Sequence record: NC_061450.1
DNA: 64,000 nucleotides
Reading direction: 5' to 3' (one strand)
Shown here: positions 1 to 17,407 of the stretch, piece after piece
Position numbering within the stretch: the first letter of the stretch is position 1
How the letters are laid out: each line of letters opens with the position of its first letter
Notes under the pieces: model-generated
Seen by the model: the letters and a program-made list of their open reading frames with translations, nothing else
What the model was told of the DNA's origin: nothing
Database searches by the model: none
Made by a program: the position numbers and the translations under genes

Positions 1-2
1 AA

Positions 3-224
3 GAAACAAGTCTGTTGAAGTCACCTATGGAGAAGCAGATTCTGGCTTCGTATTATTTTGGTGATGAGTTTATGCAGCTAAACACCAAGCAGTTCTATAA
101 TGACCTATGCACTCTCCATCAGCGTATGCCTTCTCCTAATAGTTTGGTACTTAGTCCTAAGTTGATGTATCATGTGTACTGTCAGCGTATTTCATATCTG
201 CGTCCTATGATTGCAACACTGTAA
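3..224 (+). CDS. 3' end of a hypothetical protein (frame open from window start)
   Basis: Frame has no stop from position 3 to TAA at 222-224; followed by a hairpin. Confidence 0.6.
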   Translation, partial: ETSLLKSPMEKQILASYYFGDEFMQLNTKQFYNDLCTLHQRMPSPNSLVLSPKLMYHVYCQRISYLRPMIATL

Positions 225-230
225 ACAATG

Positions 231-259
231 AGAGCGGCTTCGGTCGCTCTTTTACTTTT
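231..259 (+). terminator. UUCG hairpin plus U-tract
   Basis: AGAGCGGC-TTCG-GTCGCTCT then TTTACTTTT. Confidence 0.7.
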
Positions 260-270
260 AAGGACTAAAC

Positions 271-1323
271 ATGGCTGAAACCAAGTTCTACCAAGAAATC
301 CATCAAGCTACGATAGAGACCAATTTCTCCATCGGCGTCACTCGCAAGCATCTTACGTCTCAGCTTGAAAAACTGATTGAGACTAAGAACGGTAAGCTGC
401 CTCATTATGGTTTTTCTTTTGAGGAATTCGGCAGCTTTGTAGGAGACAAGTATACACCTAATCCTGATATGGACTTACGCCAACAGGCAATGGCAGGCTG
501 CACTCAAGTCATGTGTCACTTCATGTGGTCTTTCTCCAAGGGATCGTTTGAGCCAGAGCAGGAACTCAAAGAACACATCATCAAAAGCGATCCACCAAAA
601 GTTCTGCCTTGTGCCATGTTGCGACAATTGCCTAGCTGGTCTCAATGGATTGACTGCGACGTTGCTGTTGATATAACTGAAAACGGCGTAATAGAACAGA
701 CGCTTAGCCTTACTGGCTTTTGGGCAACTTACTGCAATGTAGGTGGCCGACTAAACTTATGCCTGACTGCTTTAGGTCTGTACTATCCGAAAGGTGATCA
801 CAACAGCGAAGATGATGACGCCCATTCTCAGGTTGCTCGTGTTTCCTGCATGTTTGAAATAGAAGAAGACAGACCTCTGGAAGATACGTGCTTGGTTGAT
901 GCATTCTTCATGAGCGCCAAAGGTAATCATGGCCTTTATGACGATCATCCAGAGTTCGAACCCATCAGCAACATGATCAAGCGCTGGGCCAAGCAGTCCG
1001 TAAACATACTTGTGTTTGTGGCTTCTGAGATTGATAGCTTGCCTGCCGAAAATCGTACAGGCATTGTTCCACGACGTAAGGGCAAACACTATCGTCTTGC
1101 CACTGTTACCAAAGAGCGACGCTGGACAGTTGGACAAGAGTTCCTTACACCTATTCGGGAATACGAAGAAGCCTTGCGCACAATGACTGTAGCACAAAAG
1201 CGTGCTGCCCACATTCGTCGCGGTCACTATCACAGCTTCTGGCGCGGCCCTCGTGATGGACAGCGTGAATTGTTTAGCAAATGGTTGCCTCCGTGTGTTG
1301 TCAGAGGAACTTTGGCAGACTAA
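271..1323 (+). CDS. AcrVA2/FinQ-family protein
   Basis: SD AAGGA. Motifs LPSWSQWID, TGFWATY, WTVGQEF..IREYE and C-terminal AAHIRRGHYHSFWRG..KWLPPCVV match recalled AcrVA2 motifs (LPDWCVYVD, KGFWAIY, YQIGERL..VRRYQ, RPHIRRGHWHGYWQG..RWQPAVFV) in the same order. Confidence 0.7.
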   Translation: MAETKFYQEIHQATIETNFSIGVTRKHLTSQLEKLIETKNGKLPHYGFSFEEFGSFVGDKYTPNPDMDLRQQAMAGCTQVMCHFMWSFSKGSFEPEQELKEHIIKSDPPKVLPCAMLRQLPSWSQWIDCDVAVDITENGVIEQTLSLTGFWATYCNVGGRLNLCLTALGLYYPKGDHNSEDDDAHSQVARVSCMFEIEEDRPLEDTCLVDAFFMSAKGNHGLYDDHPEFEPISNMIKRWAKQSVNILVFVASEIDSLPAENRTGIVPRRKGKHYRLATVTKERRWTVGQEFLTPIREYEEALRTMTVAQKRAAHIRRGHYHSFWRGPRDGQRELFSKWLPPCVVRGTLAD

Positions 1324-3555: not shown

Positions 3556-5400
3556 ATGATCGAAGTAAATAGCTTTGCTGAACTACGCACCACTCCGCCT
3601 ACCAAAGCGGGTGACACTGCGTATCTGAAACGTTACTACGACAAGGACAGCAAGTTCCGTGGCGGTGGTTGGTTTGTTGGGTTCCCACAAAAGAACACAC
3701 CAGCCGATGACGGCGGTATCAATGCTGTAGGTAAAGACGGTAAGGGCAATCCGTTCTTCTGGCAACGTGTTGTTGATGACCCTGCTGCAATCAACATCCT
3801 GCACTTCGGTGCGCGTCTGGACGGCAAGACCGATGACTCAGATGCCTATCGCCGTAACTTCATGTGGGTGTACAACATGAAAGACGGCAGCGACACTCTG
3901 GGCGTAAGCATTCCATCAGGTCCTATTCTGTTAAGCCCGATGGACTTCACCGACCTTGGTGAGATTCCGGTGTTCGCCATGTATGGTGATACGCGCTGTG
4001 AGAAAGGCTGGCGTCCACGCGTTCGCATCGTCAGTGACAAATCCAACAAGCAGGTGATCAAAGTCAATGCCCGCCGTGTTGTGATTCACGGCTTCAACTG
4101 GAACGGTCAGTGTACAGCACAGGTCAATGGCAAGAAGGTTGATCCAGAGACCATCAAAGGCGCTATCATGCCTGAGCAGCGTTCAAACAATCAGATCTTC
4201 TTTGAGAACGTCTGTCCTGCTGGTCAGTTTGTTGGCATTCGCTGCTTCCGTGGTGAGAACGTTGGTGGTTCAGCGTTGAAGTTCCAGGATACCTTGGACA
4301 CCTCAATCACTGAAATCTACGGCAGCAAGATCTTTGGTGCTATGATTGAAGCCAAGTGGTCAAACACCGTTGCTGGTGGCTGGAACCATTCTACGGCTGT
4401 ACGTCTCGAAGACGGTAACTTCCAGTTCGGTTACGGCCCTGCTGTGTTGGACATGCCTCGTATGACTCAGGCTATCATGAAGAACATCTGGATTGAGCAC
4501 ACACGCTTCCCGGGTAACCTGAATGATGGTCAGTGGGTGTTTGAAGCTAACTCAATCGAAAGCTCTGACAACCCTCTGAACCTCGCCAACACTCGCTGCG
4601 TGGTCAATGGCTTCTACTTCCAGGGCCAGGGCACCATGAGCCTTGAACGTAAAGCAAGCACGGACAACTGGCTGAGTGGCTATGAGCGCGGCAACATCCG
4701 CATCGAGACCTACGGTATCTTGATGACTGACGCCTGCTTCCGTCCTGGCTACTACACTGGTTACAAGATCACGAACAATACCGATCAGGACAAGTGGTTC
4801 TACATCGGTAGCTACTCGTTCCCTAAAGTCAACCAGACGTGGCAGATTGAACTGCTGGGCACTGCACCAGGTGTTGTTCCTAACACCAAGCTGCAACAGC
4901 CTACGCAGATGGATGGCATGGGTCGTCGTGTGATCACCATGACACGCTGCATCAAACCGCAGAAGAAAGTATATGCGGACATGCACATGGAAGGTACCGA
5001 CGCCATTGCGGATGTTGTGTATCAGCGTCTGTGGGAAGACTACGGCAAAGTGTGGGTCAAGCTGAAAGCCAACAGTGGTGACACTATCTTCAACATCACC
5101 ACAACTGGTCCAACTCGCTTCGAAGCAGGTCAGTGTACCCTCTTCTCTGATGGTCCGTGTGAATGTACTGATCCAACTCTGGCTGAAATGACTGTCAGCG
5201 TTGAGAAGAATCAGAAAGACTATGCCCGTCCTCAGCAACGTTTCAGCCTGCACAACGGTCTGGCTGGCATCGGTGCAAACGAGCAGGGTATGGTTACCAT
5301 GCAAACGGCAGAAGGAAAGGCGCCTAAAGATCTTTCCAAACCGGCGGGCTTCACCTCGATTAATATCAACGGTGTTGACCGAGTTGTTCCCTACTACTAA
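3556..5400 (+). CDS. amsF: AmsF/WceF-like tailspike-fold glycan-binding/modifying protein (candidate EPS depolymerase)
   Basis: GAGGA SD. N-terminal tailspike-like GGGWFVG..WQRVVDD..NILHFGARLDGKTDDSDA. Motifs FFENVCPAGQ, WNHSTAVRL, MPRMTQA..NIWIEHT, TTGPTRFEAG, RFSLHNGLAGIGANE and ININGVDR..YY recalled from the Erwinia AmsF / Pantoea WceF family. Confidence 0.7.
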   Translation: MIEVNSFAELRTTPPTKAGDTAYLKRYYDKDSKFRGGGWFVGFPQKNTPADDGGINAVGKDGKGNPFFWQRVVDDPAAINILHFGARLDGKTDDSDAYRRNFMWVYNMKDGSDTLGVSIPSGPILLSPMDFTDLGEIPVFAMYGDTRCEKGWRPRVRIVSDKSNKQVIKVNARRVVIHGFNWNGQCTAQVNGKKVDPETIKGAIMPEQRSNNQIFFENVCPAGQFVGIRCFRGENVGGSALKFQDTLDTSITEIYGSKIFGAMIEAKWSNTVAGGWNHSTAVRLEDGNFQFGYGPAVLDMPRMTQAIMKNIWIEHTRFPGNLNDGQWVFEANSIESSDNPLNLANTRCVVNGFYFQGQGTMSLERKASTDNWLSGYERGNIRIETYGILMTDACFRPGYYTGYKITNNTDQDKWFYIGSYSFPKVNQTWQIELLGTAPGVVPNTKLQQPTQMDGMGRRVITMTRCIKPQKKVYADMHMEGTDAIADVVYQRLWEDYGKVWVKLKANSGDTIFNITTTGPTRFEAGQCTLFSDGPCECTDPTLAEMTVSVEKNQKDYARPQQRFSLHNGLAGIGANEQGMVTMQTAEGKAPKDLSKPAGFTSININGVDRVVPYY

Positions 5401-5414
5401 AAGTGAGATCAATC

Positions 5415-5861
5415 ATGTCTTATAAAGTAGAACTCTCTGTTGTAACTTCTGGCGGTAATGAACTTCCTGCTGATCTGAAAGAGTTTGCTGATGCTCATGG
5501 CATCACCTACGAAGTCACTGATGCAGGTTCAGATCGCAGTGTTGTGACCTTTGAGTCACAGGGTCGCGATCAGCTGGAAGATATGATTCGTCAGTCGTAT
5601 GCGCCTTCAAAAGAAACAGAATGGTCGCAGTTCATTTCTCAGATTCACGCAGAAGGCGTTGATGCAGGCCAAGAGTCTTTCCTGACTCAAGGCACTCGCG
5701 AAGTTCCTCCTCACGTCTACAACGAAGACGAAGCTGTTGAACCTGCGGCTGACTCGGATGATGAAGACGAAATCGCCGAGCACGACGGTGAAGAAGATGG
5801 CGAAGAACGTATTAGTTCCCAGACCATCGCTTCTGACGCCGAGAAAGACGATCACAAGTAA
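5415..5861 (+). CDS. hypothetical acidic protein
   Basis: ORF with D/E-rich C-terminus. Confidence 0.8.
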   Translation: MSYKVELSVVTSGGNELPADLKEFADAHGITYEVTDAGSDRSVVTFESQGRDQLEDMIRQSYAPSKETEWSQFISQIHAEGVDAGQESFLTQGTREVPPHVYNEDEAVEPAADSDDEDEIAEHDGEEDGEERISSQTIASDAEKDDHK

Positions 5862-5898
5862 TCTGTAAATAAAATTCGAGGTACAATGACGTGCCTTG
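5860..5898 (+). promoter_or_regulatory. TGTA-core motif plus 5' hairpin
   Basis: AATCTGTAAATA then AGGTAC-AATGAC-GTGCCT. Confidence 0.45.
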
Positions 5899-5916
5899 TT
5901 TAACATGGAGATTAGT

Positions 5917-6183
5917 ATGTCTGTTCAGCTTGAACTATCGAAACAGAATTTGGCGGATATCGAACTGCACACCTATAGTCGCATGACTATGACCGAGCTG
6001 GTAGATAAACTCCGCGCTGATGGTATCGTGGTTCGTTCCATTACTCCGTTCCGCCCTACTGGCACACCGATTCGCATCGATGTTGTCCGCAGTGATTTCG
6101 AGCGGTACATGGAACTCTATCGTGCGCCTGAGCCTATCAATGGTGAGTGGCAACCGTTAGAAGATGCATACGTGCAATACTAA
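5917..6183 (+). CDS. hypothetical protein
   Basis: GGAG SD; terminator follows. Confidence 0.8.
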   Translation: MSVQLELSKQNLADIELHTYSRMTMTELVDKLRADGIVVRSITPFRPTGTPIRIDVVRSDFERYMELYRAPEPINGEWQPLEDAYVQY

Positions 6184-6190
6184 GAAGTTT

Positions 6191-6220
6191 AAAGGGCTGC
6201 CTTCGGGTGGCCCTTTTTCG
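6191..6220 (+). terminator. intrinsic terminator
   Basis: AAAGGGCTGCC-TTCG-GGTGGCCCTTTTT. Confidence 0.8.
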
Positions 6221-6246
6221 TTTCATAATCAGAATAAGCTCAGACC

Positions 6247-6287
6247 AGACTTATCTCAAATCGCTGTAAATAGACTTATCTCAAATC
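6247..6287 (+). repeat. 16-bp direct repeat x2, 25-bp period
   Basis: AGACTTATCTCAAATC at 6247-6262 and 6272-6287. Confidence 0.9.
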
Positions 6288-6289
6288 AG

Positions 6290-6341
6290 CAAAAAGCTGG
6301 TCAAAATACACGTTGAAAATGTGGCGAAAGTTAAGCACTAT
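6290..6341 (+). promoter_or_regulatory. sigma70-type early promoter with upstream CAAAW-N3-TGGTCAAAA element
   Basis: CAAAA-AGC-TGGTCAAAAT; -35 TTGAAA 6313; 17 nt; -10 CACTAT 6336. Confidence 0.7.
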
Positions 6342-6402
6342 ATAGACTCACGACGCAGCTTGTGGGCTGTGTCACTAATCAACATACACGAGGCAGCACA
6401 CA

Positions 6403-6735
6403 ATGACAGAAGAACGCTATGCAGGTCAGATCGACGCAGAACAGGTTGAATCAGTAACCGCCCTGATTGAGCGCATTAACCCCCAACTGCCGAAAGGCGT
6501 TCAGCTTGTTTTGTTCAGCGCCGACGAAACTGGCTTAGGCTTCGGCATGTTGATGGTTGTAAAGTTTGACGACAATGGCGAAGAGACTGGCGACTGGGGC
6601 TGGCACATCGATCTGCCCACCGAGTCTGGACAGTACGCATTCACCTACGCAGGCAACTTCTGCCACGAGAATGAAGGCAAGGTCCCAGCGACCGACGAGG
6701 CCCTTGTTCAGAAAATCCGTTCACTTGAATTTTAA
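6403..6735 (+). CDS. hypothetical acidic early protein
   Basis: GAGG SD; first gene after promoter; leader hairpin GACGCAGC/GCTGTGTC. Confidence 0.8.
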   Translation: MTEERYAGQIDAEQVESVTALIERINPQLPKGVQLVLFSADETGLGFGMLMVVKFDDNGEETGDWGWHIDLPTESGQYAFTYAGNFCHENEGKVPATDEALVQKIRSLEF

Positions 6736-6782
6736 TACGTGTGGCCTTGCGGGGCCACATCATCAACTATCGGAGTTTGACC

Positions 6783-7010
6783 ATGACAAAGAAACTGACC
6801 AAGCAGGACGTGCGTCCTATCATCGTTGCGTATCTCGACAAGATCGAACAGGCGCCTGTGGAGATCAGCGACCGCCAACGTAAGAGCACGCTGTACCATC
6901 ACGTTGTCGATCTGCGTAACAGTATGCTGGCTGATTGGTATTCGCCTGGCCAAGCACTTCGTTATCTCAAGCAAATGCAACGCAAGAATCAAGATCTGGT
7001 TAAAATCTGA
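6783..7010 (+). CDS. hypothetical protein
   Basis: GGAG SD. Confidence 0.75.
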   Translation: MTKKLTKQDVRPIIVAYLDKIEQAPVEISDRQRKSTLYHHVVDLRNSMLADWYSPGQALRYLKQMQRKNQDLVKI

Positions 7011-7019
7011 GGAAACATC

Positions 7020-7739
7020 ATGCCATCTATCAATCAAAGTAAAGTCGCACGTCCCGCTGTCTCCGACGAGCGTGTGTTCGCCATAGAGAGTGTCAGTGAC
7101 CTGTGTCGCGAACTCAAATCAAATCGTGCACCTCGAGGCAAAGCGAAACTACGCAACGAACGCTGGGACGAGGCGAAACAGCTCCAGTCTGTTGTGAGTC
7201 ACTTGATCATTTTGAGCCTCGGTAATCCTGACTCGACATACAACGGTGATTACCCAGACACTGTAGGTAAAGCCCTGCAGGATGCTGAACGCAAGTCTTA
7301 TGAACTGATCGACGACTGTATTGAGGAGGGCCTGTTGCCATTCCCGTACAAGAACGCGATGAAAGACCCGGACGCTGTTGTCGTCAAACCAAACACAGGC
7401 GGATATATAGCTCCACCTCGTAAGTCTTCTGTGGCTCCCATCACACACAAGAAGGGCGATCCCGTTCCTGAGAAGCTCAAGCTAAACAGTGAAACGCGTG
7501 CTGACCTGAAAGCATTCTGCGACGGCCAGATATCAATGCATGAACTCACAGAGAACCTGCAGGAAGAGCATGACTGTGATATTGTGCGTGTGCGCATTGC
7601 TACGCTGGAAGACAAGAAGACAGGCATCAAGATCAAGCCTGACGGTGTTATCGCTTTTGATATTGAACGTACCGTGCGTCATCGCCGCGGTATCAACGGC
7701 AACATGATTGCCACTCACGCTGTTACCGTTATCGTTTAA
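7020..7739 (+). CDS. hypothetical protein
   Basis: GAGGA SD; 239 aa. Confidence 0.85.
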   Translation: MPSINQSKVARPAVSDERVFAIESVSDLCRELKSNRAPRGKAKLRNERWDEAKQLQSVVSHLIILSLGNPDSTYNGDYPDTVGKALQDAERKSYELIDDCIEEGLLPFPYKNAMKDPDAVVVKPNTGGYIAPPRKSSVAPITHKKGDPVPEKLKLNSETRADLKAFCDGQISMHELTENLQEEHDCDIVRVRIATLEDKKTGIKIKPDGVIAFDIERTVRHRRGINGNMIATHAVTVIV

Positions 7740-7748
7740 GGAACTACT

Positions 7749-8351
7749 ATGAAAAAGTTCGGACTGTTTATCGCTGTTATGAATACCGACGTAGCCAACC
7801 CTGTTCGTTTGCGTTTGCATCAAATGGCCATAGAAAGTGTCACCAAAGTGCATTTGCTTGTGGTCTCTGACAATCAGGAACCACGCCTGTGTTTCGTGGA
7901 CCGCACCCATGTTTTGATTGAGTACCTGCCTGACGATATGGCTGATATCACTCTTTCAAACATCGTGTGCCGTGAAGTCGCTCAGCGTCCCAGCGATCAT
8001 CTGATTCGTGAGACTATCGGCCATCGGGGCAACACCTCGATCGAACCCGGCGCATGTTTCTTGCAAAAAGCCCCACCAGCACCACGTTCTATCGATCCTG
8101 ATACGGACTACACCAAGTTCACTATGGAGTGCATTTCTTGGGAAGAGACAACCAACCCAGAAGTGTTGCGCTATATCTTCGGCAGTTTCCCTACCGCACT
8201 GATGGAAGCCGAGCTTGAGCGTCGCCGTGTTGAGAACGAACAGGAAGAGCAGCAGGACCAGCATGATGCAGACACTTGGACGCAAGAGCAGGATGAGTAT
8301 GACGAGCACCAACGTCAGGAACTGGACCGTATACGAGGACGTCATAAATGA
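7749..8351 (+). CDS. hypothetical protein
   Basis: AAGGA SD; acidic coiled C-terminus. Confidence 0.85.
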   Translation: MKKFGLFIAVMNTDVANPVRLRLHQMAIESVTKVHLLVVSDNQEPRLCFVDRTHVLIEYLPDDMADITLSNIVCREVAQRPSDHLIRETIGHRGNTSIEPGACFLQKAPPAPRSIDPDTDYTKFTMECISWEETTNPEVLRYIFGSFPTALMEAELERRRVENEQEEQQDQHDADTWTQEQDEYDEHQRQELDRIRGRHK

Positions 8352-11626: not shown

Positions 11627-14134
11627 ATGAAAACTGCAATCAAAACTTCTATCGTAGCTTCTCTGGTAACTCTGGCTCTGGCACACGTATCAGCGGCCAA
11701 TGCAACAACGCAGTATGACGGCGGCCTGATTAATGTGGGTGGCGGTGATGGTGGTCTGATTAACATCGGCGGTAACGGTGGCTTTATCAATATCGGAGGC
11801 AACACTGGAACTCAGACAGCCCTGAATGGTCTGAACACCAATCTGAATATTCTCGACGGCAAAGTAACCGTGATCGACGGTAAAGTTGTTGACCTGTCGA
11901 ATAACGTTGCTGGTCTCAATACCACAGTATCTGGACTCAGCGGCACTGTGTCGCAGAACACCAAAGACATTGGTACGCTGACCAACAGCCTGAACTCGCA
12001 GAACACCAGCCTGACTAACGCTATCAATGCGGGCGACAAGCTGTTAAACGACAAACTGACCTCAGCTACTACCACGCTGGGCAGCCAGATCAAATCTACC
12101 AACGATCTCGCGGTGCAGGGTAACGCAACTGCAAACAACGCACTGACCACTGTGTACGGTCTGATCCCTCAGGTACTCAACAACGGCAAAGCAATCGCCG
12201 ATGTGAAAACTGACCTGACCAAAGCTGTTGATCAGGGCAAGCAAGTTGCAGGTCAACTCAATACCAAAATCGATGGTGTTGATTCAAAGGTTGATTCGCT
12301 GGCACAACAGGGGCAGGCTGCCTACACCGAACTGAAAGGCGATGTGTCTCAGGTTGATGGACGTGTGACTGACCTCGCTAATCAGGGCAAGCAAGTTGCA
12401 GGCCAGCTCAACGATAAGATTGATGGCGTTTCAACTCAGACCAACGGCCGTATCGATGACCTGACTGCGAAAGCAAATCAGTTTGCATCCGATACAACTG
12501 CCGCTATCAGCAACGTTAACGATAAAGCCGACGCAGGTATTGCGCTGGGTGCTGCCGCTAACGTAAAAGCTGATCTGGTTGGTGCTGGCCTCATCGCTAA
12601 CTCTGTGTGGGATGCGCATCAGCAAAAAGAGATTGATGCCAACACTAAAGGTCTGGCAGCAAACAACGCGCTGGATGCGAAACAGCAAACGCAGATTGAC
12701 GCGAATACTAAGACGGGTACTCAGAACTCCAAAGACATTGGCGGTCTGCAATCCGGTCTCGCGGCAAACACAGCGGTTGATGCGAAACAACAGCATCAGA
12801 TTGACTGGCTGAAAAGTGACTCGGCTGCCAACAAAGCAACTGACGCTAAACAGCAAACGCAGATCGATGCCAATACCAAAACTGGCACGCAGAACGGTAA
12901 AGCAATCGGCGAACTGCAAACTGGTCTGGCTGTTACCGATGCACGTTCAATCGACAACAGCGGCCGCATCACTGATCTGGTTAACGTCACCGATAAAGAT
13001 CGTACTGACATTAACACCCGTGTTGACGGTGTGTCCAATCAAGTCAACAAGAACGGTGAGCGCATTACCGACCTGGTCAATGTGACTGATAAAGACCGCA
13101 CCGACATTAACGTGCGTGTTGATGGCGTGTCTAATCAAGTCAATCAAAACACCAACGACATTAAGAACGTGGGCAACGTTGCAAATGATGCGTACAACAA
13201 CGCATACAACGCGCAGCAAACTGCCAACGCCGGTGTAGCAATCGGGCAGGACGCCAAGAACACTGCAATCAATGCGCAGAACACCGCGGACGTTGCAGTT
13301 GGTATCGGCCAGAAGAACAGCAACGATATCATCAACACCAACAATGTTCTGAACCAGAACGTTAAGCAAACCCAGACCAACACCACCAACATTGTTAATC
13401 TGGATAATCGCACTACGCAGAACACCTCTGATATTCAGACCACGCGCAACGATCTGACCAACACCAACAATGTGCTGACTCAGAACGTCAAGCAAACGCA
13501 GTCGAATACCAATCGTATCACGGTGAATGAAGGCAACATTGCCAACAACACCAAGCAGATCAATGTTAACACCACCAACATTGCTAACCACGAAACGCGC
13601 ATCACCAACAGCGAAACCAACATTGCGAACAACACCACTGAGATCAAAAAGACTCAGACTGTTGTCAACAACCAGGGTAAAGTGTTGCAGAACCATGAGA
13701 CGCGTATCACCAACAACGAAACCAACATCAACAACCTGGCTGGTGATTACTACCAGTTCCAAGATACCTACAACTACAACAATCAGGTCATCAATCAGAA
13801 CATCCAGAGCTACTCTAATCAGGCTGTTCAGAAATCGAAAGCGTACACTGATCAGCAGGTCGGTAACCTGCGCAACGATTGGCAGCGTGGACGCAGCGAA
13901 GACCAGAGCGAATATCGTAGCGGTATCGCGGGTGTTGCTGCAATGTCTAACATCCCTAACGTTCCAGGCACCAAGTGGAACATGGGTGCAGGCGTGGGCC
14001 AGTTCCACGACAAGACAGCGCTGGCCGTTGGTGGTCACCTGAACATCAGCAACAACGTTTCTGTAAAAGCAAGTCTGGGCTTTGCTAATGACAGTGACGC
14101 CGTCGCTGGTATCGGTATGAGCATCGGTAACTAA
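11627..14134 (+). CDS. YadA-type trimeric autotransporter adhesin-like protein
   Basis: Sec signal peptide ending AANA; Asn/Thr-rich coiled-coil stalk (NIANHETRITN); C-terminal anchor SGIAGVAAMSNIP..GAGVGQF..ALAVGG..VKASLGF..AGIGMSIG. Confidence 0.85.
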   Translation: MKTAIKTSIVASLVTLALAHVSAANATTQYDGGLINVGGGDGGLINIGGNGGFINIGGNTGTQTALNGLNTNLNILDGKVTVIDGKVVDLSNNVAGLNTTVSGLSGTVSQNTKDIGTLTNSLNSQNTSLTNAINAGDKLLNDKLTSATTTLGSQIKSTNDLAVQGNATANNALTTVYGLIPQVLNNGKAIADVKTDLTKAVDQGKQVAGQLNTKIDGVDSKVDSLAQQGQAAYTELKGDVSQVDGRVTDLANQGKQVAGQLNDKIDGVSTQTNGRIDDLTAKANQFASDTTAAISNVNDKADAGIALGAAANVKADLVGAGLIANSVWDAHQQKEIDANTKGLAANNALDAKQQTQIDANTKTGTQNSKDIGGLQSGLAANTAVDAKQQHQIDWLKSDSAANKATDAKQQTQIDANTKTGTQNGKAIGELQTGLAVTDARSIDNSGRITDLVNVTDKDRTDINTRVDGVSNQVNKNGERITDLVNVTDKDRTDINVRVDGVSNQVNQNTNDIKNVGNVANDAYNNAYNAQQTANAGVAIGQDAKNTAINAQNTADVAVGIGQKNSNDIINTNNVLNQNVKQTQTNTTNIVNLDNRTTQNTSDIQTTRNDLTNTNNVLTQNVKQTQSNTNRITVNEGNIANNTKQINVNTTNIANHETRITNSETNIANNTTEIKKTQTVVNNQGKVLQNHETRITNNETNINNLAGDYYQFQDTYNYNNQVINQNIQSYSNQAVQKSKAYTDQQVGNLRNDWQRGRSEDQSEYRSGIAGVAAMSNIPNVPGTKWNMGAGVGQFHDKTALAVGGHLNISNNVSVKASLGFANDSDAVAGIGMSIGN
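11720..13740 (+). repeat. internal tandem peptide repeats of the autotransporter (approximate span)
   Basis: GG(L/F)IN(V/I)GG x3; QGKQVAGQLN.KIDGV x2; KQQTQIDANTKTGTQN x2; RITDLVNVTDKDRTDIN.RVDGVSNQVN x2; NTNNVL.QNVKQTQ x2; NHETRITN.ETNI x2. Confidence 0.85.
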
Positions 14135-14145
14135 GTAAAACCTCT

Positions 14146-14167
14146 GGGTGCCTTCGGGCACCCTTTG
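14146..14167 (+). terminator. intrinsic terminator
   Basis: GGGTGCC-TTCG-GGCACCC-TTT. Confidence 0.75.
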
Positions 14168-14189
14168 TTACTTGTCAGGAGATTTCAAT

Positions 14190-14363
14190 ATGGGTTATCC
14201 AACTTGCGCTGATTGCGGTTGTCGAATCCGCAGCGGCTATTGCACCAACTGTCAGGAAGAAGCCTATATCATGGACGTTCAGGCGGCAGAAATGGATATA
14301 GAGTTCAGTCCTGAATTTTCAGAAGTAGCCGCAGAGCAACGTAGACCAATTAAAGGTGAGTAA
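14190..14363 (+). CDS. small zinc-finger protein
   Basis: CADC..CTNC; AGGAG SD. Confidence 0.7.
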   Translation: MGYPTCADCGCRIRSGYCTNCQEEAYIMDVQAAEMDIEFSPEFSEVAAEQRRPIKGE

Positions 14364-14880
14364 AATGAATTTTGCTATCATCAAAGCACTCAAAGCAGTT
14401 GGCGAGGAGATTGATAGTCTGTTCAATGCCAGCCCATTCCATGAAACGTCTATTCGACTGACTTGGTCACAACAAGCAACAAACGACGATTTCCTCGATG
14501 AGTTTACTCGCATTGATTTCCGCGTGTTCACCAAGCAAACTCATCCCAACGAACGTCAGCACAAGAAGATTGAAGACTACACGCTGGGCTTTGAGTTTCG
14601 TTGGGATGCCAGTGTCCCACAACCTGATGCCTATCTCCGTTTCGGATTGTACTCTGCTTCAGGCATGGAAGCAACTGTTCTACCATGGGTGCCTTATATG
14701 GACTTTATTGACCAGTCTGCTTTTGGGGTATGCAACAGACTGCTGGGACAAGTTGCTCATGCGCCTGAGTTTCAGGCTCATTTAAAAACATATACCGATG
14801 CGGCCATTGATTCACGTTGGATTGCAGATGTTTTGAGTGCATTTGCAGATCAGCGCACCATGATCGAGTCATGCCTGTAG
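14356..14880 (+). CDS. hypothetical protein
   Basis: 174 aa ORF in the operon. Confidence 0.8.
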   Translation: MSKMNFAIIKALKAVGEEIDSLFNASPFHETSIRLTWSQQATNDDFLDEFTRIDFRVFTKQTHPNERQHKKIEDYTLGFEFRWDASVPQPDAYLRFGLYSASGMEATVLPWVPYMDFIDQSAFGVCNRLLGQVAHAPEFQAHLKTYTDAAIDSRWIADVLSAFADQRTMIESCL

Positions 14881-15164
14881 CCTATGAGGCTGTTGTCGAA
14901 CTTGTGGAAGAAGACGGCAGCTACGATCTCCCCGAGCTTCCACACATCTACTCCGCGTATGTTCGTGACGTTTGGACCAACAAACGCATCGACGTAAAGA
15001 CACGCGGTAAAACTAAATTGCCTGAGGGCAGAATACGTTGGTCAAAGTCCGAAGAACTCGTTGAGTGGTTTGACGTTGACCCTTCTCGCTATACACTTTT
15101 CATTGTCAGTCCGTGGTCAGAACCCCATGACGACAAACAGGAACAAGGAACTCAAGATGAATAA
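14871..15164 (+). CDS. hypothetical protein
   Basis: Overlaps both neighbours. Confidence 0.7.
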   Translation: MPVAYEAVVELVEEDGSYDLPELPHIYSAYVRDVWTNKRIDVKTRGKTKLPEGRIRWSKSEELVEWFDVDPSRYTLFIVSPWSEPHDDKQEQGTQDE

Positions 15165-16041
15165 CTACAGTGGCAACGTTGACGCAATCAAACCTACAGT
15201 AGGTACCCTTCCAGTTGTCTTAATTGATGGTCTGAGAAGTCCTTCTCTCGGCCGTGTTATGGAAAGTGTGTTGATGTGGCAGAACGGCGAGATTGAACTG
15301 CAACTCGTCTCAGGACAAGATGCACCCCATCGCACAGGTGTGTACCTGTGTACTGACAGTCGCGGTAATGTACGTTACGGTAGCTTAACTGCAACTGCCG
15401 CAGACTGTTTTCGATTCAAAGAAAGCTACGCTAATGGCGGCAGCACTATTTGGTACGACATGGACGCAATGCCGAGTGAGTTCGTTGAGCCAGACGATCT
15501 TGACTTGGCTGATCTCAGCAACTGGATGCTGATCATGCCTCTGGTCAGTGGCAACTACAGCGACCACAGTATGTTCCCCGAAGGCTACAGTCCTCGCGTA
15601 GAAGAAGTTTCAAGTTCAATCTCTCCGACTCCTTGTGACAACCGCACGCCAGACCAGTTGAACTCCATCGAGAAGTCTGGCATGAATGACCCTGAGCACG
15701 TAGAGCATTCTGAGGGTTACTATCAGTTTTATCGCTGGGCACAAAACTTGCGTGGTGAAAACTTGAGAGCATTTCTGCTTTCTCTGTCTGCGTTCTTCAA
15801 ACGTGACGTAGGTACAACTGAGTTGTTGCAGATGCCTTTGTCAGAGTGGCGTCAGTACGCAACTTATCTGGCCACCAGTAACGTTGGTCCTGAATTGCTG
15901 AGTCTCTTCACTATTTCTCACTGCCGAAACATCTATGTGCTGGCACGTAGCAGCTACTATCGCAGAATGGATAAACAGCCTCTGCCTCAGCGTGATTACG
16001 ATGCCATGCGTCTGGAGGTAACAAATGGTAGAACTTGCTAA
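15157..16041 (+). CDS. hypothetical protein
   Basis: AAGGA SD; 294 aa. Confidence 0.85.
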   Translation: MNNYSGNVDAIKPTVGTLPVVLIDGLRSPSLGRVMESVLMWQNGEIELQLVSGQDAPHRTGVYLCTDSRGNVRYGSLTATAADCFRFKESYANGGSTIWYDMDAMPSEFVEPDDLDLADLSNWMLIMPLVSGNYSDHSMFPEGYSPRVEEVSSSISPTPCDNRTPDQLNSIEKSGMNDPEHVEHSEGYYQFYRWAQNLRGENLRAFLLSLSAFFKRDVGTTELLQMPLSEWRQYATYLATSNVGPELLSLFTISHCRNIYVLARSSYYRRMDKQPLPQRDYDAMRLEVTNGRTC

Positions 16042-16234
16042 GGGACCACTCGGACAGTTAGTTTTCGTCTGGCTCTCAGTAATGGGATACTTTGCAGCAC
16101 GCATCTACGGTCTGATTCAGGATGAACCTCTTGGTCTGGCGTTCATGTTTGCTGCTGCTATTGTTATTATGCGCCTCACGCCAATGGCCTGTGAATCGTT
16201 TCGCACCTACTGGTATCAAAGAAGGAAGAACTAA
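16025..16234 (+). CDS. small membrane protein
   Basis: Two TM-like helices; GGAGG SD. Confidence 0.75.
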   Translation: MVELAKGPLGQLVFVWLSVMGYFAARIYGLIQDEPLGLAFMFAAAIVIMRLTPMACESFRTYWYQRRKN

Positions 16235-16563
16235 TGTTTACACGTCTCAAGGAATTTTTAGAGATCTGGCCAACAACGTCAGAGGCTCTGGAGAAGCGTG
16301 CTGCCTGTGTCAAGACCGGACACCACTGTTACGTTGTGAAAAACAAAACAGGGCAGGCAGAAGCGCAGCAACGTGAAACCGCCGTGCTGTGTTCTCGCAT
16401 CAACTCTGAACAACAGCGCGAAGACATTCGCCGTACAGTTGCCCGAGAGCTGGAGCGTGACACAACGCTGTACCCCAAGCTGTTGACCTTTGGCTCTACT
16501 GGTACTCTCATTGTGGCTCCATTGAGCTACGACGTTAACATTGCAGACATGATGGACCTCTAA
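16234..16563 (+). CDS. hypothetical protein
   Basis: TAATG coupling. Confidence 0.75.
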   Translation: MFTRLKEFLEIWPTTSEALEKRAACVKTGHHCYVVKNKTGQAEAQQRETAVLCSRINSEQQREDIRRTVARELERDTTLYPKLLTFGSTGTLIVAPLSYDVNIADMMDL

Positions 16564-16564
16564 C

Positions 16565-17407
16565 ATGCTAAACAAAATCTCATTCGGCGCGGCTCTTCCT
16601 TACATGGAAATACGCCACGACAAAAATCCCAAGCGCAGCCTCGTGCTTACCAACAAGTCGTTTGAGTTCGAGCCTGGTCTGAACATGCTGGTGGGCGCTA
16701 ACGGCAGCGGTAAGTCAACTCTGCTTGAAGCCATCGCAAAGCGCTTCCTGTGCTTTAACTTCGGTACGCCAAACCTCGATAAAGAAACGTTTGGCTATAT
16801 GTCTGAACTGTGGGAAAAAGATGAGGAGTGGTCGTGGCGGGATGAGAAGTTCCTGCCTTATGTCGATGTTGTGGCTGAACCTATCCCGTACACAATGTAC
16901 GCCAGCCCTGAGTTCACCCCGATGGGGCAGCCCAATCGTGCCTATGCTATGTGCTATGGCTTGGGCAAGATCGCCACTGAATACTACGACAAGGTAGATA
17001 GCCATTCGAGCGGTCAGGGCATGAGCAACGTACTTGCCTCCATGTTTGAAATTCTACGTGGTGCTGAACGTCCCATTGGCCGCAGACAGGTAGAAAAGCA
17101 TGAATGGCGTGATGAACGTGACAGTGGTAAAAAGCAAGTCAACTGGCTGGACCAAAACATCTTACCCAAGTCTGATGCGCCAGTCACGTTGTTGCTGGAC
17201 GAGCCTGAACGTGCTCTTGACCTGAATGCGCAACTCAAGTTCTGGGCAGACCTGACAGAGTTTAGCAAACAGCCCAACGTCCAGATCATTATCGCAACCC
17301 ACAGCATCATTCCAATGTTTATGCCTGATATCAAAGTCAACTATGTTGAAATGACCGATGGCTATGCAGACAGCTTGACACAAGGCGTCAGAAAACTCAG
17401 CAAATAG
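16565..17407 (+). CDS. stand-alone ABC-fold ATPase (COG3910-like)
   Basis: Walker A GANGSGKST; signature-like SSGQG; Walker B LLLDEPE; H-loop IIIATHS. Confidence 0.85.
   Translation: MLNKISFGAALPYMEIRHDKNPKRSLVLTNKSFEFEPGLNMLVGANGSGKSTLLEAIAKRFLCFNFGTPNLDKETFGYMSELWEKDEEWSWRDEKFLPYVDVVAEPIPYTMYASPEFTPMGQPNRAYAMCYGLGKIATEYYDKVDSHSSGQGMSNVLASMFEILRGAERPIGRRQVEKHEWRDERDSGKKQVNWLDQNILPKSDAPVTLLLDEPERALDLNAQLKFWADLTEFSKQPNVQIIIATHSIIPMFMPDIKVNYVEMTDGYADSLTQGVRKLSK

Follow-up and report, generated by a model that had tools for sequence, protein, structure and literature searches.

An AcrVA2/FinQ-family protein of the Erwinia jumbo phage pEa_SNUABM_5 and its proposed role in silencing a specific target

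The final 64 kb of the genome of Erwinia phage pEa_SNUABM_5 (MW366843.1/NC_061450.1; 267,169 bp; genus Rivsvirus; host Erwinia amylovora), to which the stretch of DNA analysed here is identical and which is referred to below as the window, carries near its start a gene, pEaSNUABM5_00253 (hereafter 00253), whose GenBank label is 'hypothetical protein'. By sequence, profile, fold and Pfam assignment the 350-residue product of this gene is confirmed as genuinely belonging to the AcrVA2/FinQ family, as the first-pass annotation had held, and the carrier is the enterobacterial jumbo phage that this annotation had taken it to be. The protein retains the residues that mutation has defined in AcrVA2, it evolves under purifying selection, and the distribution of its gene is accessory and linked to the host. 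AcrVA2 binds the N-terminal LSKT polypeptide of Cas12a and lowers the level of cas12a mRNA, and to our knowledge it is so far the sole bacterial protein that reads a nascent polypeptide in order to have that polypeptide's own mRNA destroyed. We propose, with a probability of roughly 0.55, that 00253 silences one specific target co-translationally in the manner of AcrVA2, and that the likeliest target would be a defence component of the host, or of an element resident in it, that hinders the phage in Erwinia. Several Erwinia jumbo phages are under development for the biocontrol of fire blight.

Family assignment, fold and conserved residues

A single-sequence phmmer search of all chains in the PDB returned AcrVA2 (7ci1/7ci2) as the sole match of the 350-residue protein, with an E-value (E) of 1.5e-6. 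The match consists of two collinear stretches, query residues 86-155 against residues 80-145 of chain 7ci1_A and query residues 285-344 against residues 255-316. No other PDB sequence was matched at E<=10 and, thus, the match to AcrVA2 is far above chance and extends beyond the C-terminal motif. When the seven closest relatives were aligned and used as a profile (the clade profile), AcrVA2 was again the only PDB match, with E 2.5e-12 and with two stretches covering query residues 72-158 and 278-338. Identity to AcrVA2 is ~16%, and at least six blocks are collinear in the two proteins: the W86 block, PP..LP..LP.WS.W.D, GFWA.Y, W.VG...IR.Y, HIRRGH.H..W.G and KW.PP. The first-pass annotation had counted five blocks in the AcrVA2 order, and the motif that it placed at the C-terminal end, HIRRGHYHSFWRG, is found there at residues 314-326 of 350. 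It had also named a likeness confined to this short motif as a ground for rejecting the assignment; the N-terminal and middle stretch found by HMMER and a full-length fold match show that it is not so confined. The precomputed Pfam assignment of 00253 and of all 7 close relatives is PF26125, 'AcrVA2-like', and PHROG 6160, of unknown function, matches 00253 at E 4e-60. Searches by hmmscan with NCBIfam, PADLOC and a Pfam-A set that excludes PF26125 gave nothing relevant for 00253, and the single Pfam match obtained in this way, PF22600 (E 0.089), was rejected as noise. As a gene on a 267-kb phage genome, 00253 is carried by a mobile element.

The fold agrees with this assignment. An AlphaFold2 (AF2) model built on the 7-sequence alignment had a predicted local distance difference test score (pLDDT) of 75.2 and a predicted template modelling score of 0.77. 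Foldseek found three matches to this model in the PDB at E<=1e-3 and all of them were AcrVA2 (7ci2_A, 7ci1_B and 7ci1_A; E 2e-8 to 1e-7, probability 1.00), with template modelling (TM) scores of 0.41-0.50 (TMq) and 0.47-0.55 (TMt) over ~357-359 columns and 0.50/0.55 for the best chain; the next PDB match was at E 0.04. The fold matches of the model in BFVD were all uncharacterised proteins. Like AcrVA2, which is encoded by a Moraxella bovoculi prophage and has a PDB chain of 323 residues, 00253 is phage-borne and is made up of a helical N-terminal part, a beta-rich middle part and a flexible C-terminal part, and the two match over the full length of the fold. The C-terminal domain of AcrVA2 has been described as loosely packed and partly disordered, which agrees with the low pLDDT of 00253 from residue 315 onwards.

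In AcrVA2, the W79A and D89A mutants have weakened activity, and H286A, R288A and H291A lose mRNA down-regulation while binding to Cas12a stays intact (bioRxiv 10.1101/2022.11.29.518452). All of these mutationally defined positions are kept in 00253: in the numbering of that paper, to which the PDB chain numbering adds 1, W79 corresponds to W86, H286 to H314, R288 to R316 and H291 to H319, and D89 corresponds to E96 with its acidity retained. W86, H314, R316 and H319 are also kept in six orthologues including FinQ, the one exception being a tyrosine in place of W86 in the RisingSun protein. Among 147 distant representatives of the family, the residue of 00253 is shared at H314, R316, H319 and G326 by 99%, at H321 and W338 by 97%, at W324 by 92% and at P341 by 91%; in the other parts of the protein the values are 95% for W86, 97% for P113, 100% for P121, 93% for G149 and 97% for G288. 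W123 and G149-F150-W151 belong, with P113 and P121, to the conserved residues of the middle domain.

Outside these positions the protein is far from uniform. Residues 281-350 of 00253 are 81% identical in the Yoloswag protein, 41% in that of Alexandra, 40% in JA13, 33% in RisingSun, 34% in FBKp24 and 39% in FinQ, and the values in the same order are 42, 12, 22, 20, 11 and 10% for residues 1-80 and 42, 9, 13, 13, 13 and 5% for residues 176-230. The first 80 residues are therefore among the most variable of the protein, and residues 176-230, which are 5-13% identical in distant orthologues, form a stretch that is acidic as well as variable (16 D+E vs 3 K+R). Judged from these alignments, the architecture is that of a constant C-terminal module joined to N-terminal and middle parts that have diverged to the level of noise. 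We propose that the N-terminal domain is the specificity part, and that the C-terminal module may be the effector part that associates with the ribosome and triggers mRNA decay. In such a mechanism the fast-diverging N-terminal and middle part would recognise the nascent chain of one target on translating ribosomes during infection, the conserved basic C-terminal module (H-x-R-x-x-H-x-H...W...G...W-x-P-P) would engage the ribosome and recruit a host RNase, the target mRNA would be degraded and the target protein would never be made. A 2026 editorial on the paper of Marino et al. (Nature 2026) describes an association of AcrVA2 with ribosomes and polysomes that is mediated by the C-terminal part of the protein, and the recruitment of a cellular enzyme in place of mRNA cleavage by AcrVA2 itself (PMC13728456).

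The same residues bear on whether 00253 could have the AcrVA2 fold and another activity, that is, bind or inhibit a finished protein stoichiometrically or have some other role without mRNA decay. AcrVA2 also binds mature Cas12a, namely residues 620-636 in 7ci2, and this binding alone is not inhibitory (bioRxiv 10.1101/2022.11.29.518452). Binding of a mature protein, the ~16% identity and the fact that the mechanism is established for a single member of the family would all suit such a role, but the invariant residues, H286, R288 and H291 in AcrVA2, are those needed for mRNA down-regulation and not those needed for binding, and protein-protein binding by itself does not inhibit in AcrVA2. We therefore regard another activity as improbable.

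Distribution among plasmids and phages

FinQ was represented by the 363-residue open reading frame (ORF) of the E. coli IncI1 plasmid NZ_CP010142.1. It aligned with the clade profile in hhalign with a probability of 98.6% and E 6e-16 over 239 columns, and with AcrVA2 (7ci1) at E 3.9e-17. FinQ and 00253 are alike over ~240 columns and have identical HIRRGH.H..W.G and W.PP signatures in addition to the C-terminal identity given above, and the parts outside the C-terminal module are 5-15% identical. AcrVA2, FinQ and 00253 are thus all homologous. In published models of AcrVA2 and FinQ the C-terminal domains agree and the N-terminal parts diverge (bioRxiv 10.1101/2022.11.29.518452). A tblastn search of a plasmid collection matched 570 records, 549 of them conjugative, and most were E. 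coli, Salmonella or Shigella plasmids with a finQ annotation (IncI-type), aligned at E 1e-5 over query residues 74-344.

FinQ of IncI-type conjugative plasmids inhibits F transfer via lowered tra mRNA, and Marino et al. have proposed that the family aids conflict between mobile genetic elements (bioRxiv 10.1101/2022.11.29.518452). Both 00253 and FinQ are genes of mobile elements and FinQ is believed to lower the mRNA of specific targets, so that 00253 could in principle be a weapon of the same kind, one that silences a gene of a plasmid or prophage in the same cell, or of a co-infecting phage, in competition between elements or superinfection exclusion. The strong homology to FinQ, the high share of conjugative plasmids and the proposal of Marino et al. 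all speak for this. However, 00253 is on a lytic phage and not on a conjugative plasmid, and the F tra genes that are the targets of FinQ are irrelevant for a lytic Erwinia phage. A virulent jumbo phage with a short cycle may also gain little by silencing the new synthesis of a competitor, and the link to host genus described below fits a host target and a host-resident element alike and does not discriminate between them. A weapon against competing elements is, in our view, unlikely.

The finQ gene occupies positions 364-1455 of the retrieved piece of NZ_CP010142.1, where RefSeq gives a protein of 259 residues with its start at 676 and the ORF from the ATG at 364 gives 363. Since the homology to the phage profile begins at residue 80 of this ORF, which is 5' of the RefSeq start, the true start is probably further upstream than annotated.

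The size of the family became visible only in an exhaustive HMMER profile search of 1.84 billion representatives, which gave 2,178 clusters at E<=1e-3, 527 at E<=1e-10 and 9 at E<=1e-30; a word-indexed protein search, even with a profile, reached only the close clade of 8 clusters. The Erwinia and Dickeya phage proteins are a small and distinct clade within a large family. By tblastn, relatives were found in 84 phage records, of which 58 are of Erwinia phages, 7 of Klebsiella, 6 of Serratia, 3 of Dickeya and 3 of Salmonella phages, with a few others. The AcrVA2-like gene was always present in single copy in these records and nearly all phages that have it are jumbo phages. One relative, RisingSun gp126 (4896-5897 of the retrieved piece), is labelled 'putative mycothiosynthase' and is AcrVA2-like by the hidden Markov model (HMM) of the clade (E 1.6e-25) and by Foldseek (E 5e-14); the label looks wrong.

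Within the clade the gene has a fixed place. The same gene order is seen in Rivsvirus, Yoloswagvirus, Alexandravirus and three close metagenomic relatives: sigma-like factor, SSB, UvsX, one or more small orphans, an orphan of ~245 residues, the AcrVA2-like gene and a conserved gene for 89 residues; in the wider surroundings of 00253 the sigma-like factor, SSB and UvsX are upstream and a tail-spike hydrolase is downstream. The gene for the sigma-like factor was used as a marker and was present at >=70% identity in 48 Erwinia, 8 Dickeya and 1 Yersinia records. The AcrVA2-like gene is at the syntenic place in 48 of the 48 Erwinia records (~260 kb) of this group of jumbo phages, a figure obtained by counting tblastn rows in which 3 of the 48 sigma rows were matched by number only and not by name. 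The HMM of the clade, which recovered every known copy, had no match, even at E<=10, in Dickeya phage JA11 or Yersinia phage fHe-Yen9-02, each searched over its 23-kb syntenic stretch.

Dickeya phage JA13, which is of the same species as JA11, has an AcrVA2-like copy at another place in its genome (3773-4816 of the retrieved piece), directly upstream of a gene for an HD_4-domain protein like a (p)ppGpp hydrolase. In JA11 an unrelated stretch of ~0.48 kb (3700-4180 of the retrieved piece) exactly replaces the JA13 ORF between flanks with 96.5% and 99.3% identity, and no remnant of the AcrVA2-like gene was detectable in this stretch. JA33 is like JA11, and the unrelated stretch of ~0.48 kb in these two phages has an 81-residue ORF. 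The AcrVA2-like gene thus moves as a cassette of the size of its ORF, and whether a phage has it goes with the genus of the host. Since relatives on Yersinia and the Dickeya phage JA11 are without the gene and JA13 and JA11 differ at this locus only by the cassette, the gene is dispensable for the basic phage programme.

Divergence of 00253 is greater than that of its conserved neighbours. It is 52% identical to the Yoloswag orthologue and 30% to that of Alexandra, the respective values being 85 and 77% for the sigma-like factor, 73 and 65% for SSB and 71 and 58% for UvsX. Among the closest relatives its ratio of nonsynonymous to synonymous divergence (omega) is 0.08-0.13, which is purifying; for SSB the values are 0.07-0.14 and for 00252, the gene immediately upstream, 0.16-0.34.

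These observations bear on a further explanation, namely that 00253 serves host take-over or self-regulation and shuts off a host housekeeping protein or a phage early protein as part of the normal programme. The fixed slot beside the sigma-like factor, SSB and UvsX in three genera, the presence in every one of the Erwinia records, an omega of ~0.1 like that of SSB and conserved hairpins that bound the gene like an ordinary phage transcription unit are all as expected from such a role. Nevertheless, we consider it unlikely too, because close Yersinia and Dickeya relatives manage without the gene, which the JA13/JA11 difference also marks as dispensable, and because a recognition part at noise level among phages of E. 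amylovora would be odd for a single conserved housekeeping target.

Host CRISPR content and the proposed target

The first-pass annotation had expected hosts with type I rather than type V-A CRISPR, and the literature agrees with it. The cas cluster of E. amylovora is of type I-E and lies between CRR1 and CRR2, and CRR4 is a type I-F remnant; neither 'Cas12' nor 'type V' occurs anywhere in this account of E. amylovora CRISPR (PMC9004355). A host with type I-E and without type V-A makes a type V-A anti-CRISPR role very unlikely, and as E. amylovora is by this account without Cas12a the target must be another protein. Membership in the AcrVA2 family is what would point to a true anti-CRISPR against Cas12a. 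Besides the CRISPR content of the host, the absence of an acrVA1-like partner or aca gene beside 00253 speaks against such a role. 00253 also differs from AcrVA2 in its low identity and in being carried by a virulent jumbo phage and not by a prophage. The equivalents of the AcrVA2 residues in contact with the Cas12a 620-636 peptide (D107 and E137) vary among the phage orthologues, and most members of the family are found in settings without Cas12a.

The first-pass annotation had read 00253 as destroying co-translationally the mRNA of some other host defence or housekeeping protein, and this can reasonably be inferred from the retained functional residues and the accessory character of the gene. 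Anti-defence is one of several possible target classes, and it is on the evidence given above that we infer the biochemical mechanism and the class of the target. Co-translational silencing of a defence component in Erwinia is, as stated, the reading that we prefer. A bolder version of it is that the Erwinia/Dickeya clade is a re-targeted AcrVA2 machine, in which a conserved ribosome-coupled C-terminal decay module would be combined with a diverged reader of a non-CRISPR nascent chain, either of a host defence or of an Erwinia-specific factor; for this version we would put the odds somewhat below even. If it is true, mutually unalignable N-terminal variants in phages of the same host would correspond to different targets, and the family would be a natural and modular form of gene silencing addressed by polypeptides, with a reach well beyond anti-CRISPR.

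Several results weigh against silencing of a defence component. The demonstrated mechanism is limited to one member of the family, AcrVA2, and the residues in contact with the Cas12a peptide, which the phage orthologues have not kept, give no pointer to the target. The TM scores of 0.50-0.55 and a root-mean-square deviation of ~9 Å from AcrVA2 mean that the arrangement of the domains differs, and the C-terminal module, to which the effector role is given, has the lowest confidence in the model (pLDDT <50 for residues 315-350, from an alignment of seven sequences). PADLOC has no related defence model for 00253. The five nearest neighbours of the gene have no Pfam or PHROG match, and no aca-type regulator, acrVA1-like gene or known anti-defence gene is beside it. 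No positive selection was seen, omega being 0.03-0.45 over all regions and pairs; synonymous divergence is near or at saturation and this test therefore has little power. Finally, ordinary purifying selection and a syntenic slot that is universal in the Erwinia-infecting phages and lies among genes of replication, recombination and transcription (sigma-like factor, SSB and UvsX) fit a housekeeping function in the phage equally well. The occupants of the slot in JA11 and in the Yersinia phage gave no informative Pfam matches and, therefore, there are no grounds for describing the slot as an anti-defence island.

Relatives of AcrVA2 in such settings have been described before. Huge-phage proteins that cluster with AcrVA2 were noted in 2019 by Al-Shayeb et al. 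(bioRxiv 10.1101/572362), ORF43 of Shewanella phage vB_SbaS_Y11 is AcrVA2-like and the host has type I-E (PMC10846135), and mobile elements, plasmids and megaphages among them, are known to carry ~1,800 AcrVA2 orthologues, typically in the absence of Cas12a, for which other targets have been proposed (bioRxiv 10.1101/2022.11.29.518452). Among the entries listed in Supplementary Table 2 of Marino et al. Erwinia phages were not found, which is only suggestive. 00253 belongs with the members of PF26125 and PHROG 6160, with ORF43 and with the huge-phage cluster, and some of these phage copies are likewise in type I-E hosts without V-A; the sources of these sets, unlike the present analysis, draw no particular attention to the Erwinia/Dickeya clade, to the fixed slot of its gene or to the behaviour of that gene as a cassette. 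The novelty implied by the first-pass annotation was overstated, as orthologues on megaphages in Cas12a-free hosts and the Pfam family are already on record, and 00253 is a well-supported case and not an unprecedented one. What is new is the firm annotation of the Erwinia/Dickeya jumbo-phage clade, the fixed slot, the clear variable and constant architecture and the JA13/JA11 cassette polymorphism. A gene labelled 'hypothetical' in ~50 Erwinia jumbo-phage genomes gains an annotation, and the design of a constant effector with a variable recogniser can be seen very clearly within one host species. The question for the field is which targets the ~1,800-2,000 relatives found in hosts without Cas12a act on; the 00253 locus is an entry point to this question and not the answer, and JA13 and JA11 are a natural presence/absence pair from which the target could be read descriptively.

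DNA signals and neighbouring genes

The positions of the features of 00253 and its surroundings in the window are collected in Table 1.

Table 1. Features of the 00253 locus, in positions of the 64-kb window (aa, amino acids; nt, nucleotides; CDS, coding sequence)
Feature	Position	Strand	Remarks
pEaSNUABM5_00253, AcrVA2/FinQ-family CDS, 350 aa	271..1323	+	ORF intact from ATG to stop; QQO90395.1
N-terminal helical domain, residues ~1-105	271..585	+	AF2 helices 6-16, 25-38, 50-60, 69-89, 97-105
W86, equivalent of AcrVA2 W79	526-528	+	HMMER alignment
Middle domain, residues ~106-280	586..1110	+	beta-sheet strands 124-221, long helix 229-252
C-terminal conserved module, residues 281-350	1111..1320	+	basic, 14 K+R in 70 residues
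Signature H314-x-R316-R-G-H319-x-H321-x-x-W324-x-G326, residues 314-326	1210..1248	+	HMMER alignments
Shine-Dalgarno AAGGA	260..264	+	6 nt 5' of ATG; read from sequence
GC-rich hairpin with TTCG loop, then T-tract	230..251	+	20 nt 5' of start codon, between 00252 and 00253
Upstream gene pEaSNUABM5_00252, 3' end	1..224	+	246 aa, orphan; whole gene 7484-8224 in larger retrieved locus
Downstream gene 00254, 89 aa	1400..1669	+	conserved right flank of slot
Terminator-like hairpin after 00254	1696-1731

A GAGGA or AAGGA Shine-Dalgarno sequence is kept in the relatives of 00253. The hairpin upstream of the gene is conserved in pEa_SNUABM_5, in the metagenomic relatives L006, L007 and L008 and in Yoloswag, and its stem has a compensatory change in L008, from A-T to G-C. 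It is probably either a terminator-like element or one that stabilises or processes RNA. Between the hairpin and the ATG there is no space for a sigma-70 promoter; hence, either 00253 would be transcribed by read-through of a terminator or the hairpin would be an element of RNA stability or processing.

Neither adjacent gene could be retained as a partner of 00253. The upstream gene, 00252, is an orphan limited to 8 phage records, and 00254, for which no PDB relative was found, is also present in phages without the AcrVA2-like gene and so is not an obligate partner. The gene of the slot that is truly hypervariable is 00252, with 42% identity to its Yoloswag counterpart and 25% to that of Alexandra: it has no Pfam or PHROG match, and it could not be aligned by blastn between relatives that are otherwise 76-91% identical. 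We also considered 00253 as a hotspot of allele replacement, as L006 and L008 have near-identical UvsX and are saturated at 00253, and rejected this because the whole downstream block is ~76% identical and only 00252 is exceptional. The mosaic boundary between L006 and L008 coincides with the end of UvsX: nucleotide identity is 91% in the SSB-UvsX block and ~76% downstream of it, which indicates recombination between related jumbo phages.

The 64-kb window has ~100 genes, most of them annotated 'hypothetical', and no tRNA or tmRNA genes and no Rfam families at gathering score were found in it. The UvsX/RecA-like protein of this region varies in length, with 501 residues in JA11 (13359-14864 of the retrieved locus), 853 in pEa_SNUABM_5 (4455-7016) and 1,167 in fHe-Yen9-02 (13398-16901). 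The extra ~350 residues of the pEa_SNUABM_5 protein have no Pfam match, and the protein of the Yersinia phage has an intein splicing domain (PF14890, E 4.5e-14).

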